A DNA stretch of 64,000 bases from Styela clava (taxonomy: Eukaryota). The stretch covers positions 16,864,001-16,928,000 of the forward strand of contig NC_135256.1 of NCBI RefSeq assembly GCF_964204865.1, read 5' to 3'. This document shows positions 41,611 through 63,973 of the stretch, piece after piece. Numbering within the stretch: position 1 is the first letter of the stretch; each line of letters opens with the position of its first letter. The position numbers and the translations under genes were made by a program. The notes beneath the pieces were generated by a model, which searched no databases, was not told where the DNA came from, and worked only from the letters and a program-made list of their open reading frames with translations.

Positions 41611-44600
41611 TCAAAATATTGGATAACATTTTGAGCCATTTCCGGTGTATCCAACCTGGCAGGAACAAACGTAGGTGCCAGGTATGTTGGAGCAAATTCC
41701 ATTGTTTTCGTCACAATTATTTGAGTCAGGTTGCAAGCATTCATTAAAATCTGAAATATATGGGGGAGCGGGGGGGGTGGGAATGTAAAATTCACCATGA
41801 AGTCATTTGAAAATTTGTTCATCGATTATGTAGTGTAGTTTATCACTCGTTTTTGAATCCATTTTTACTATTTTGCATATCACCAGCAGCCCAGCACTGG
41901 ATCACAGTTTGGTATTCGGTAAACAGAATTTATATTATTCGATATCGAACTTTTGTACTCCACTCAATAATTTAAGTTTGTCATATATAACCATTTCCAA
42001 TGGAACGAACCTTTGCATAATACTCCATTTCCAACGTAGCCTTGTTTACACGAACACTTGTAACCACCACGTTTATTGCGACAAGATGCATATTTACTAC
42101 ATTTGTGCGTATTCATCTTACATTCATTCAAATCTGAGAAAATAAGTGGCAAATATTTATATTACTTGTATTGCCATCGTAATATTTACGAAGCATGTTT
42201 GTTTGTTTTTCGAATGCCGTTGTTTTTGAGGAATCCTCCAAAAGAGACTGTTTTTTACAACAAAACACAAAATTCTTGAATTTTGAAGGAGTATCTTTTA
42301 CGCATGAGACGTATTTGAATGTAATGTATTTTTGAAAACAAAAATTTAAACTGTGCTGAACTTTATTACTTATTGTAGCAAAAGTATTACAAAATTTAGT
42401 CTACTCCAGCAATCAGAGAACAATTATTCAGTACCTCTACATCCCCTTTTTGACTTTGTTAATCCTTTTCTACAAAGACATTTGTAGCTTCCACGTGTAT
42501 TTATGCAGATCTGTGACCTTTTACAGCTGTGTGTTTTGTCTATACATTCGTTTACATCTGAAGACATTGAGTAAGTCAGTATTCATTCCATTTGAACACG
42601 CAACAATTAAAAAGAGATAAATATAAGTATTTCAAAAAAAGAGTAATTCTTTGTAGGCAAATATAGCAATGAAAAATCGCCATGTTATCGAGCTGTGACA
42701 CTTTATAGTTTGACACTCAACATTTTGCCTCGTGTTGTCCACTGATCAACTCGAAAAATATTTTATGATGGACTAAGTTTATGACCTGAAAATCAAAACA
42801 GTAGAATCCTACTAATCAGTAGCTAACTGTCTGTTTTTGTGGTGTAACATCTGGGCGAAGCTCCAGAACGCTTCATGCAAAAGTATGTAAATATTTTTAT
42901 CGAAGTGTATTCATCTAATAAATATTATATATCAATAAAGAAAAAAAACTATTTCAAACAGTAATGTAAAGCCTGGCCGTCAACATTGAAGCAAAACTTT
43001 TATTTTGTTCTAGAATTGGATAATTCTTCAAACCTTGACACATATTATCAATGTATTTCATTCCTTTTGGGCATTCACAAGTGTACGATCCATTCGTATT
43101 AACACAGGACGATTCTTCTGGACATTTAAAAATTCCTACCGCGCATTCATTATCATCTGAGTGAAAAAATATTGATCAATGTAGTAAAGAATAGTCATAA
43201 GTATAAATTTAAAAATAACGAAGTATTTCACATTAAAAATGCAAATAACTGCGCGCAAATTTTCATTTATAAATTTGCTAGACTGAATCCTCTTTATTTT
43301 AATTTATATATATTATTATCTTTTTTATAAATTGGATATGAGTGGATTGTGAAGCTAAAAACGTAATACATAATCACAAAATTCATGGCATGGGGTAATA
43401 GTGGACGAAGCAGGTCACAAAAAGTTCAGGTATATAGCTAGACCGCAAATCATACCACGGCACGAAGACTCCTTGTAAGTATATCCTTCTTCGCATGTAC
43501 ATTCATATGAACCCTCAGTGTTTTTACAATCAGCACCGGGACAAACTTCGATCCCTTCCATTGAACATTCGTCAACATCTGTTTCAAATCACCGAAAAAC
43601 AAAATAAAACATTGCAGTGAAATTTTGAGTAAGTGTGGGGTAGCTTGCAATCACTTTTTAGCACTAAAATAAAAAAAATATGATCAAATATGCTACGAGG
43701 CGTTGGATAATAAAGTACGCATGCACGCAAGACTCGCGAAGTGCAGCATATAAAGTCATTAAACAGCTAAATCAAAAAGGTGGCGCAGTATTCAATAAAA
43801 AAATAAGACAGATAGTACTAAATCGATTCTCATGCTGAGGTATAAACAACCACTACGAAAGAATCATCATACCGACACACTGTACTCCGTCTCCATGATA
43901 TCCAAACTTGCATCTGCATTCATAGGATCCAAATGTATTAACACATTCAGCTTTTTCGTTGCATATGCTTCTGATTTCGCATTCATTTATTTCTAGAAAC
44001 ATGCATGCATCGATGAAACACCAATTATTTATTACATACGAATAAAATAAATTATATCTATTTCACAATTTGCGTTGGCTTACCAAACTAAGTAATCATA
44101 TATATATATTAATCTCGTGGTAAATTACCTTGACAAATTCCTCCAACCATTTTGTATCCAAAGTCGCAGACACATTCGAAGCCATCCTCGGTCTGCGTAC
44201 ATTCAGAACTTTGGGGGCAGGCCTTTTGTTTACAAATGTGAGAGCCTGATACAAAAATATTGTGCATAATTATCAACTTAGAAATTTATTTTTATATCGA
44301 TTAATGATGGTAGCGACTATATTCATTTGAAGCCATATTTCGCCAATGGAAATAAATACTGTACTTGAGTACTAATTCAAACTGACTACAGAACGCACAT
44401 TTGGCAGACATAGATGGCAAACATGGAATGAAAATGTCTGTCTTCCGTACAATTTTCATAGAAGAATATTTTACCCGTCTTCGCAAATACGTATTTCCCA
44501 TCGCTGACTTTGACCCCGCTTTTAGATACAAATGAAAAAATATATTCTGTATTTTCTTCCAATCCTGTAACATGAGTGTCCGTGCTCTCGCCGGATAGTT

Positions 44601-62600: not shown

Positions 62601-63973
62601 AGATAATCCACCTTTTGTATCCAGGGACAAACGACCGTAGTTCGACTCCACAAAATCGAGATAAAAATTGTCTTTTGTTGCCTCATACAACCACACAGCT
62701 CCCCACACTAATTCATCATCGTAACCGCTTGACCTTAATTGCATTTAAATATTTATAACGAAAGTTCTTTTTTTGCTGATCGTGATTGAAATATTTTCAA
62801 AAAATTATGATAATATTAACCTAATAGTTGAGATAAACACTACGCTAATTATTAAAACCACGTACTTAAATATGCACAAACGTGATATTGTGGTTTGCAG
62901 TGTTATTGTGGAATCTCTTCAATAGTCGGAACCTGGCCAGTTTTGACAAATTTCAATAGAATCAAAGATTGTGATATGTCAAGGTTGCATTTCGGCGACG
63001 TTCAAGAAGTATGTGTACCAATATGGAGGGCACTAATTTTGTTCGCCTACTTTACATCAAGCTGTGTAAAGGGACTGAAACCTATGTGGAGGGGTATATT
63101 CACTTGGCTAATACAGACAGTCCTGAACTCGTAATAGAACTAGAATAAGGAAGATTGAAACAAAATTATGCCCTAACCTGGTACTGGTACACACAACACG
63201 GGAGTACGATTCCAGCTTGCTTGTACAGGTGTTTGCTTGTACAAAATCTCATTGCTCCTTTTTACTTATAAAGTTTTAACAAACCAGCTGGAAGTGAACT
63301 TCGTACATGATTCATGTGTGACGGAAAGTAGGAACAATCTAATTTACACAGGATAGTTGGGACAGTATTTTAACTAGAGTTTAACCAAATATGCCTAACA
63401 GAATACCCATAAAATTCTTCTGCCTTTTTCATCACTAAAAAATCGTATCTTCCTCTATATACTTCAGCAAACTGCCATAGTTCTTTAGCATGTCCTATTA
63501 ATTTTGCTGAATAATCCGGTGCTGAAACAAAGTAAAATACGTAAGAAAGAATGCAATAGCTTCTTAGTAATAACCTTCAAAAATGTGTTCGAGACGTTTG
63601 AAAATTATGAAAAAAAAAGTTATATGGAAGAATAATATGTAATATAATTAAATAAATTGGCAAATTTTTTTATAATTATATACGAGACAATGCAAAAACC
63701 ATATATTTTCCAACATCCACATCTACGTGTTATAGATTGAGCATCATATCGGTATACCCAATGCAACCCTATATTTGAAGGTTCACAGAACGTGGAATTC
63801 TAAACGAACTCACCAACTTTTTCAAACAAAATTGAAGCAGCAGCTAAAGCGGCTGCTGTTTCAGCTGCAAGATCAGATCCTGGTTCGTCCGGTGATAATT
63901 TAAATGCAGGTCTTTCCCAATCCATCCGTTGAGAACTTTCCCATAATTTGTGATCAATGTCAGGATCGCCCAC
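41611..63973 (-). CDS. Mosaic protein: GH9 endoglucanase-like domain (catalytic Glu->Gln) - EGF - 2x CBM2-like - 2x FN3 - EGF + 6x cbEGF; 5' end outside the window; ~1279 aa visible
   Basis: 30 GT-AG exons with continuous phase: 63973-63814, 63521-63407, 62733-62574, 62203-62056, 61655-61478, 60952-60824, 60750-60615, 60495-60432, 60354-60247, 51616-51477, 51117-50937, 50823-50764, 50384-50325, 50252-50184, 49812-49601, 49494-49386, 48877-48702, 48274-48211, 47361-47305, 47136-47042, 46782-46506, 45017-44902, 44631-44475, 44245-44129, 43992-43873, 43578-43456, 43156-43034, 42557-42435, 42133-42011, 41750-41611 (TGA). GH9 motifs [48 protein letters not shown]. Confidence 0.75.
45310..45975. 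repeat. Two inverted arrays of a ~16-bp unit (foldback-like intronic element)
   Basis: CCCACGTACATTTGCA-type units at ~45310-45470 face TGCAAATGTACGTGGG-type units at ~45595-45975, with a ~120 bp unique centre. Confidence 0.75.
47383..47410. repeat. (AT)n microsatellite
   Basis: Perfect AT run; a similar one lies at ~48641-48665. Confidence 0.9.
47483..47783 (+). mobile_element. Helentron-associated / DINE-1-like non-autonomous element (tentative)
   Basis: 5' palindrome CGATCTTAAGATCG, (GTCT/GTTT)n tract near the 5' end, 3' stem-loop TCGGTCTCCGACCGA followed by CTCGTTT, the layout typical of HINE/DINE-1 elements. Confidence 0.4.
51973..53083 (-). repeat. 3' LTR (1111 bp, complete) with internal 24-bp tandem repeat
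   Basis: Starts TGTTGCGC and ends GCTAACA on +; repeats GGAACGTAAAGGAACGTTGTTAAT at ~52290-52412; adjacent to the PPT. Confidence 0.9.
53181..54605 (-). CDS. pol: BEL/Pao pol C-terminus (integrase), original orientation
   Basis: HHCC zinc finger (H..SHH...CIFC), DDE core ([23 protein letters not shown]), C-terminal LRRPIAKLC. Confidence 0.92.
   Translation of the reverse strand, partial: FKIYLQAKPTVQKGELQTEELRRSENELIKYLQNCELNKVIAKLQNSDVQGKSVLRNLKIAPSMQKLNPVLIKGILRVGGRLQNAPIEFDLKHPIILPSNHHITQLIVREYHKSSHHCGASHTWNLLRQKFWIINGAVVVKRNIRDCIFCKKRNASMGKQFMADLPKERVTPDQPPFTCVGVDNFGPLLVKQGRSSVKRWGLILTCATTRAVHLEIVHSMDVNSFINGLRRFIARRGKMSTIICDNGSNFTAGNKVLKKEIQIWNSSKMGEFCSQSDIIFKFNPPTASHFGGFYERLIRSARKILTALLHDQLVTDEALSTIFCEVESQLNSRPLTPISMDPLDEEPLSPNHLLLLKHKANLPPGIFDKKDCYARRRWRQIQYLADQFWIRWSREVLVNLQARHKWLKKEDNFKVNDLVLLVDNTIPRGKWLTGRIMEVIPDKFGAVRQVTVKTSHGFLRRPIAKLCMIQRADE
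54801..58933 (+). CDS. gag-pol: BEL/Pao gag-protease-RT-RNase H, lying in the inverted block
   Basis: Three Cys/His knuckles (CVIC...H....C; CRNC....H....C; C....C...HH..LH), protease FLDEGS, RT YIDD, RNase [13 protein letters not shown]. The ORF read-through to 59003 derives from the foldback junction. Confidence 0.92.
59134..60037 (-). repeat. 5' LTR, truncated at its inner end by the rearrangement
   Basis: Matches 52123-53083 apart from a 57-bp indel in the tandem-repeat region and one substitution that I could spot; its terminal ~62 bp appear inverted at ~54604-54664 and ~59014-59074. Confidence 0.9.

Follow-up and report, generated by a model that had tools for sequence, protein, structure and literature searches.

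We analysed a 64,000-nt stretch of the genome of the tunicate Styela clava (the window; NCBI RefSeq assembly GCF_964204865.1, contig NC_135256.1, positions 16,864,001 to 16,928,000 of the forward strand; G+C 34%, no runs of N) and rebuilt a gene lying on its minus strand at 41611–63973. With a probability of roughly 0.55, a single gene here encodes a secreted modular protein of ∼1526 amino acids (aa), which would act as a multivalent linker or organiser of tunic cellulose and matrix. The predicted order of parts is signal peptide, N-terminal CBM2-like module, GH9 domain, EGF domain, a first internal CBM2-like module (X1), linker, a second such module (X2), linker, two FN3 domains, one EGF domain, six calcium-binding EGF (cbEGF) domains and stop. 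To our knowledge, tunicates are the only animals that make cellulose, and the way in which cellulose microfibrils are held in the protein matrix is, as far as we know, poorly understood.

Gene model

Splice sites were set by phase and simple scoring and then refined against homologues (P0004, P0008, P0009 and others described below). Pfam was run exon by exon and the searches used single exons or database homologues, while the joined spliced protein was analysed in scripts only. All coordinates follow the window numbering. The gene starts outside the window, at ∼67788 in window-style numbering, and 9 kb of further sequence (L002) was taken.

The resulting stop-free model has 34 GT-AG exons (4581 nt, 1526 aa), 29 of which (3783 nt) are located in the window and five upstream of it. 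Phase is preserved at every AG/GT junction of the model, including the phase-1 junction from 60247 to 51616 across a retrotransposon-bearing intron. The first exon begins MDKGIYLIWIILVCLTFLSPVSTAA. A single stop codon is found at 41611–41613, with an AATAAA (a polyA-like signal) at 41356, 255 nt downstream; the last cbEGF exon has no GT from the final Cys to the stop, and the protein ends four residues beyond its last Cys. The only hydrophobic segment of the predicted protein is the N-terminal signal peptide, and no membrane segment is seen.

A first-pass annotation of the window had described 30 exons (3840 nt) in unbroken phase. The continuity of phase stands, and our model has the 29 exons given above. 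The same annotation had placed the stop codon where the rebuilt model has it, had read the 60247 to 51616 junction in matching phase 1, as our model also predicts, and had seen no transmembrane segment, which holds for the full-length model. Its proposal of a secreted protein agrees with the predicted signal peptide. Its order of domains (GH9, EGF, two CBM2-like modules, linkers, two FN3 and seven EGF/cbEGF) is borne out part by part by Pfam, profile and fold evidence.

Exons of the gene, all on the minus strand:
63001–67788 (L002 1–4788): first five exons, all outside the window (signal peptide; N-terminal CBM2-looking module, two exons; first two GH9 exons)
63814–63973: GH9 exon 3, first of the GH9 exons within the window; PF00759 E 3.6e-14, profile positions 119–169
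63407–63521: GH9 exon 4; PF00759 E 3.5e-6; donor weak
62574–62733: GH9 exon 5; PF00759 E 2e-10; canonical ‘sWDxK’ reads SYDNK
62056–62203: GH9 exon 6; no Pfam match alone, placed by phase and GH9 alignment; WGSLRY stretch reads QNEPVAL
61478–61655: GH9 exon 7; PF00759 E 5.2e-11; HHR signature kept; strong donor CAG|GTAAGT
60824–60952: GH9 exon 8; PF00759 E 0.016, profile positions 396–424; GALVGGT...FDDHR
60615–60750: GH9 exon 9 with acidic Gly/Ser tail; NQPN at the catalytic acid; alternative donor 60665; tail matches P0009
60432–60495: tentative mini-exon, phase 0 in and phase 1 out; AG/GTGAGT sites; length and position fit the P0009 linker
60247–60354: EGF exon directly after GH9; Pfam EGF (PF00008) E 2.7e-5, above cut-off; aligns with the EGF of P0009, P0004 and P0008
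51617–60246: phase-1 intron of 8.6 kb with a BEL/Pao-type long terminal repeat (LTR) retrotransposon (Peptidase_A17, RVT_1, rve, DUF5641)
51477–51616: X1a, first half of internal CBM2-like module 1; 54% identity to P0009 residues 91–138; profile A1 E 1e-12
50937–51117: X1b, second half of module 1 (VWHTC...GWQTN...CFKTSNF); 44% identity to P0009 residues 138–196, E 5e-15
50764–50823: predicted linker exon 1 with a conserved post-module Cys; best phase-compatible chain; Cys motif recurs in P0004, P0008 and P0009
50325–50384: linker exon 2, tentative; from chain search
50184–50252: linker exon 3, tentative; from chain search; by eye like the pre-X2 stretch of P0004 and P0008
49601–49812: X2a, first 70 residues of internal CBM2-like module 2; profile A1 E 2e-32
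49386–49494: X2b, second half of module 2; aligns to P0004 residues 566–602
48702–48877: Pro/Ser/Thr-rich linker exon with post-module Cys; strong sites, coding score 14.3
48211–48274: basic Pro-rich linker exon, tentative; both splice sites strong; its phase (0 to 1) joins it to 47136
47042–47136: FN3-1 first exon; weak fn3_SORL1 match, E 0.076; phase-compatible
46506–46782: FN3-1 second exon, charged insert; fn3 E 0.0048, below cut-off; acceptor alternatively 46683 or 46662
44902–45017: FN3-2 first exon; fn3 E 5.4e-4, below cut-off
44475–44631: FN3-2 second exon; fn3 E 0.037; tblastn to the P0004 FN3, E 0.001
44129–44245: EGF1, non-calcium type; EGF_MSP1_1 E 2.6e-8
43873–43992: cbEGF 2; EGF_CA E 3.8e-9, EGF_3 E 9e-10
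43456–43578: cbEGF 3; EGF_CA E 3.6e-10
43034–43156: cbEGF 4; EGF_CA E 4e-9
42435–42557: cbEGF 5; EGF_CA E 2.2e-13
42011–42133: cbEGF 6; EGF_CA E 5.1e-11
41611–41750: cbEGF 7 with the stop codon; EGF_CA E 2.6e-9

Several exons and sites are tentative: the three short exons of the X1–X2 linker, the exon 48274–48211, the acceptor of 46782–46506 and the end of the GH9 part. At the latter, a longer route (GH9 tail 60750–60615 plus mini-exon 60495–60432) is favoured over the donor at 60665, because its predicted 41-residue linker fits the 39-residue linker of P0009. An exon-chain search also offered extra tiny exons between 48700 and 45030; these were rejected as overfitting, and only 48274–48211 and the FN3 exons were kept.

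A GH9 domain without two catalytic carboxylates

Glyco_hydro_9 (PF00759) was detected in six exons of the window and two upstream exons, covering profile positions 1–424; five of these eight exons score above the cut-off individually. Matches to GH9 structures in the PDB reach E 6.6e-21, with animal GH9s as the nearest solved chains (GH9 exon 9 alone had no phmmer match in the PDB). We number catalytic residues as in Thermobifida fusca Cel9A.

The exon after the first catalytic-core intron can be aligned with T. fusca E4 (1js4), starting at residue 57 of the chain, so the GD that it retains is G57-D58. The preceding exon has GGYYI at its end and a phase-1 donor, and splicing 65636 to 64396 gives GGYYIAGDYVKF; the position of D55 is thus occupied by Ile, and the DAGD motif reads IAGD, with D58 kept. 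At the other end of the domain the register of exon 9 was set by a multiple alignment of canonical GH9s and by an alignment of P0008 to the solved chain 4zg8. Compared in the multiple alignment with Y.D.R.DY..NEVA.DYNA (the PROSITE pattern for this signature we take to be Y-x-D-x4-Y-x3-E-x-A-x3-N-A), Glu424 is replaced by Gln and the second aromatic Tyr by Ile. The NQPN of this protein aligns with the canonical NEVA, and in the same register P0008 has NQPD opposite the NEVA of 4zg8. Beyond these sites, other residues stand in place of WGSLRY and Tyr takes the place of the Trp in ‘sWDxK’, while the HHR signature is kept (YTHHRDSSCP aligned with the HHR of all GH9 rows).

Other GH9 genes of the same genome served as an internal control: at the position split by the intron, five loci keep D, and the acid Glu is seen in three, as NEVA, SEVA or TEVT. 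Two homologues, P0008 and P0020, likewise have Val/Ile for Asp and Gln for Glu while being only ∼25–40% identical to this protein, and the loss of both carboxylates is thus old and has been maintained. We conclude that the GH9 domain is a predicted pseudo-enzyme with two of its three catalytic carboxylates replaced, as the first-pass annotation had proposed in calling it a pseudo-cellulase.

An active enzyme with altered chemistry has to be weighed at this point, namely an endoglucanase or transglycosylase that would trim or remodel tunic cellulose, targeted by its CBM2 modules and anchored by its rod. It would resemble KORRIGAN-type GH9 enzymes, which act in plant cellulose synthesis. In its favour, the protein retains D58, the HHR signature and much of the fold, larvacean relatives have the acid Glu, and the GH9 family of Oikopleura dioica is reported to be expanded, with members expressed in the house-making epithelium (preprint 10.64898/2026.03.31.715263). 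On the other side stand the joint replacement of Glu424 by Gln and of Asp55 by Ile, common to P0008 and P0020, and the further loss of WGSLRY and of the ‘WDxK’ Trp. In T. fusca Cel9A, loss of either carboxylate removes nearly all activity. We consider such an enzyme rather improbable and retain the pseudo-enzyme for what follows.

The closest GH9 sequences are those of animal GH9 endoglucanases (termite NtEG, 1ks8; earthworm, 3wc3/8ihx; abalone-type CBM2-GH9), which share the layout of an N-terminal CBM2 (here a CBM2-like module) followed by GH9 as well as the HHR and DH..W motifs. Unlike them, the present protein has Ile at D55 and Gln at E424, has lost WGSLRY and carries ∼930 extra residues (EGF, two CBM2-like modules, FN3, cbEGF) after the catalytic domain. 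Animal GH9 is described in the literature as acting in digestion (PMC10334666).

Internal modules as divergent CBM2

The four X exons and the two exons of the N-terminal module gave no relevant Pfam match, CBM_2 included, with E up to 10, and P0009, P0008 and P0004 gave no CBM_2 match at E 0.01. A phmmer search with the 70-residue exon 49601–49810 against 1.84 billion protein representatives returned ten matches, which makes the module rare; two of the matched proteins (P0006 and P0010) are repetitive and of low complexity and were treated as spurious. No representative returned from this protein collection, which includes S. clava proteins, reached 50% identity to the X2a exon; the public gene model may lack this exon. 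In the S. clava genome the X profile matches only two copies, both in this gene, as against at least 12 GH9 loci. A hidden Markov model of X over both halves detects X1 with E 3.8e-36 and X2 with E 3.9e-35.

Assignment of the modules to CBM2 follows from the agreement of profile, fold and language-model features. Profile A1, made from nine first-half X sequences, had three matches among 177,635 PDB sequences; all are CBM2a (1exg, 3ndy_E and 6qfs) and in register, with sub-significant E of 0.13–0.19. Clusters of the ESM Atlas nearest to X carry PF00553 (scores 0.77–0.83).

An AlphaFold2 fold was made for P0009, the closest homologue (44–54% identical), from a 21-row alignment; over the X module the predicted local distance difference test (pLDDT) score is 66–88 by block and mostly >74. 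With this predicted module Foldseek found CBM2 chains as the matches of low root-mean-square deviation (probability 0.99–1.00, TMt 0.5–0.7). An independent VIA-align search has at least six CBM2 modules, by PDB title, among its ten best chains (2xbd, Z 8.5; 3ndy_E, 8.1; 6f7e, 7.5; 5dhe, 7.1; 1exg, 7.0; 2rtt, 6.8), with 84–97 residues aligned over Z 8.5–6.8, though Z below 8 can be common and the fold alone would be weak evidence. Three more of the top ten are chitinase entries aligned over their non-catalytic end domain.

The equivalents of W17, W54 and W72 of Cellulomonas fimi Cex are Trp in both modules of the window; the first two come from HMMER alignments to 1exg and 3ndy_E, the W72 equivalent (GW) from pattern only. 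Among 27 copies of the module, Cys is conserved at three positions (37, 48 and 90), and the linker has a fourth; the CBM2a pattern of a disulfide between N- and C-terminal Cys is absent and the Cys of X are placed otherwise. Bacterial CBM2a (Cex, 1exg; Clostridium cellulovorans EngD, 3ndy_E) would have in common with X the beta-sandwich fold (Z 7.0–8.1, for the P0009 model), the in-register W..W.sG...W.l.f.fPs motif and the three aromatic positions. The X modules differ from them in lacking a Pfam CBM_2 match, in the Cys pattern and in being internal, repeated and split by introns. Together these data support a view of X1 and X2 as divergent CBM2 modules with the aromatic positions kept, in accord with the two CBM2-like repeats noted at first pass.

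For the N-terminal module, outside the window, the ESM Atlas links the P0020 equivalent to PF00553 clusters (score 0.90, 183 shared features). A kinship between this module and X was considered and dropped, since the hhalign probability against the X profile is 4% and no relation is shown.

A matrix protein with a ligand other than cellulose, chitin or another beta-glycan in, for example, gut or pharyngeal mucus structures, could also make use of such modules. Among the best fold matches are several CBM2 modules that bind chitin (5dhe, 2rtt, 6bt9 and 5xsv), and chitin synthase is reported to be expressed in O. dioica epithelium (10.64898/2026.03.31.715263). Against this, the only sequence-profile matches are cellulose-binding CBM2a, and the three aromatic positions are kept as in CBM2a. 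Moreover, the partner domain GH9 is a cellulase family, and the present family has so far been found only in tunicate-like sequences, that is, in the group to which, as far as we know, cellulose synthesis among animals is confined. We give the non-cellulose ligand little credence and keep cellulose as the probable ligand.

The FN3 and EGF rod

EGF_CA (PF07645) was found in six of the last seven exons with 37–50.6 bits (cut-off 27), and the six domains start with EINEC, DVDEC, DDNEC, DVNEC, DLNEC and DFNEC. The fn3 family (PF00041) scored below its 25-bit cut-off in three of the four FN3 exons (E 5.4e-4 to 0.037) because each domain is split between exons; in P0004 two fn3 domains are detected with E 4.2e-16 and align to 44625–44473 of the window. 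This supports a predicted C-terminal part made of FN3 domains and a six-unit cbEGF array.

Matrix proteins of the fibrillin, fibulin and tenascin type have in common with this part the tandem cbEGF array (D-x-D/N-E-C starts, CxNxxGSYxC cores), the FN3 pairs (predicted here) and one phase-1 exon per EGF. They differ from the present protein, which has no TB, fibulin-type or fibrinogen domains and whose N-terminal half is directed to carbohydrate.

If the acceptor at 46782 is used, FN3-1 contains, in 46506–46782, a strongly charged stretch of ∼30–45 residues, acidic and then polybasic; it may be an insert that binds glycosaminoglycans or may merely reflect which acceptor was chosen. Between FN3-1 and FN3-2 the intron has two short satellite-like arrays (45314–45464 and 45597–45828; units of 16, 32 and 63 nt), both within long stop-free, non-coding stretches.

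Homologues with the same architecture

The GH9-EGF-X core is present in six further predicted proteins, one of them from O. dioica; FN3 and EGF occur as well in several. Related proteins with the same order of parts, found among database sequences:
P0009, 287 aa: GH9 tail, linker, EGF, X1, linker and the beginning of X2, all read in one frame
P0004, 1076 aa, from a contig of 3.7 kb: the tail of GH9, then EGF, three X, two FN3 and EGFs
P0015, P0016 and P0018, 1174–1217 aa: GH9, EGF, FN3 and cbEGF (precomputed Pfam), three X each
P0019, 1077 aa, an O. dioica NCBI protein with the UniRef name ‘Endoglucanase’: GH9 and three X (precomputed Pfam lists GH9 only)
P0008 and P0020, 1357 and 1389 aa: N-terminal module, GH9, EGF, three X

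The tunicate homologues have the same order of GH9, EGF and X repeats, and FN3 and EGF follow also in P0004, P0015, P0016 and P0018. They carry three X modules, as against two in this gene, and the larvacean set differs in its intact acid Glu. The larvacean-type proteins P0015, P0016 and P0018 end in hydrophobic tails after the last EGF, which could be glycosylphosphatidylinositol signals, membrane anchors or read-through; the protein of the window has no such tail.

At first pass the architecture had seemed perhaps to be without parallel. It does occur elsewhere, uncharacterised, in at least one larvacean, O. dioica (P0019), and in several further assemblies. P0019 could not be matched to a named gene in the GH9 table of the O. 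dioica preprint, in which sequences are truncated, and our literature search found no published description of this architecture and no function described for any of these homologues. The listed proteins of the Oikopleura house proteome include no GH9 or CBM2 oikosin (PMC3390340). Every domain is of a known kind, and the interest of the gene lies in how they are combined, in a predicted loss of catalysis that is conserved and in an occurrence so far confined to tunicate-like sequences.

One gene or two

The 8.6-kb intron between the EGF exon and X1a contains the following:
52123–60037: BEL/Pao-type LTR retrotransposon
∼52123–53083 and ∼59134–60037: LTRs, 99.9% identical over 736 nt, differing in a 24-nt tandem repeat
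54771–59003, plus strand: gag-protease-reverse transcriptase frame, 1410 aa
53184–54617, minus strand: integrase frame, 478 aa
54522–54733 and 58932–59143: a 212-nt segment exactly duplicated within the element

The element looks rearranged or nested, as judged from its sequence. Given the near identity of the LTRs, the insertion is young.

This raises the question of two transcription units, in which a CBM2-GH9-EGF gene would end after 60247 and the X-FN3-EGF part would be a separate gene or would have been silenced when the LTR element split it off. Such a split would fit an intron occupied by a young element, junctions that are known from genomic sequence alone, and the fact that the X2a exon lacks a representative at 50% identity or more, though annotated proteins of this very assembly are in the collection. 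Several observations speak for a single gene instead. The exon at 51616 opens in phase 1 and fits the phase-1 donor at 60247; every exon downstream of the intron is intact. In the parts of the intron outside the element, upstream of 51616, we found no exon that combines an ATG and signal peptide with a phase-1 donor, and it would be implausible for a Cys-rich extracellular array to lack a signal peptide. The same order in a single frame is seen in P0009, P0004, P0008, P0019 and P0020, and P0009 is co-linear with nine exons of the model, including both that flank the intron. With the architecture conserved in other tunicates, the fusion is no artefact of reading two neighbouring genes together; the first-pass annotation had likewise read the GH9 and X-FN3-EGF halves as one protein. 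We therefore regard two units as unlikely and treat the locus as one gene.

GH9 family in the genome

GH9 is present in the S. clava genome at no fewer than 12 loci (on C1, C2, C3, C6, C8, C16 and C17), with several tandem clusters. Many of these copies are also pseudo-enzymes, with loss of the same residues in several. The S. clava NCBI protein P0035 combines thyroglobulin-1 with GH9 (C8:17.08 Mb) and has His at D55 and Ala at the acid; its GGYYHSGDYVKF matches the reading obtained by splicing locus L004, which lies 155 kb from the present gene. An intronless GH9 open reading frame at C2:29.04 Mb has Lys at the acid. In P0021 (S. clava, 2071 aa) four GH9 domains are present, three with Gln at the acid and one intact.

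Proposed role

The N-terminal half, with its CBM2-like module, a GH9 domain devoid of two carboxylates and two divergent CBM2 modules with Trp kept at the flat-face aromatic positions, would hold a beta-glucan without cutting it. The C-terminal half (two FN3, one EGF and six calcium-binding EGFs) would be a typical animal matrix rod. The glycan-binding half would most probably bind tunic cellulose microfibrils, and the rod would engage matrix proteins or itself. The ligand, the secretion into the tunic and the cross-linking role are what we infer from a gene model, domain assignments, residue losses and a conserved architecture, all obtained in silico. The adaptor between cellulose and matrix suggested by the first-pass annotation is in this sense partly supported.

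There is an analogy of mechanism with chitinase-like lectins (GH18 pseudo-enzymes such as YKL-40), in which a glycoside-hydrolase fold no longer has its acid and persists as a secreted protein that binds glycans; fold and ligand are other than here, and those proteins have no fusion to CBM or to a matrix rod.

Several points weigh against the proposed role. All junctions, above all the one from 60247 to 51616, are readings of genomic DNA and, with so young an insertion, intact downstream exons do not prove present-day splicing. Membership of X in CBM2 comes from the fold and from sub-significant sequence matches, with no Pfam CBM_2 match, and the predicted fold is that of the homologue P0009 (44–54% identical), not of the window protein itself. 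CBM2 modules bind chitin and xylan too, and chitin binders are among the top fold matches of X. As Glu is kept in the larvacean relatives, the family as a whole need not be inactive. In the GH9 tree four proteins of the long architecture lie on one side of a branch with a support of only 60.9, and a single origin of these proteins, which we considered, is not shown by so weak a value.

A broader proposal, which we hold tentatively and with less than even confidence, is that of an ancestral tunicate-specific family of cellulose-to-matrix cross-linkers, with GH9 used as a chain-binding lectin and a CBM2-derived array mounted on an FN3/cbEGF rod. If this is true, such proteins would give order to cellulose microfibrils both in the tunic of ascidians and in the house of larvaceans, and would supply the molecular connection that is missing between a cellulose synthesis acquired horizontally and the extracellular matrix of animals. 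The gene is a further clear example of a glycoside hydrolase that has become a pseudo-enzyme, in a genome with several similarly altered GH9 copies. It is a concrete candidate for knock-out and expression studies, for which its ascidian-like and larvacean relatives allow comparison.

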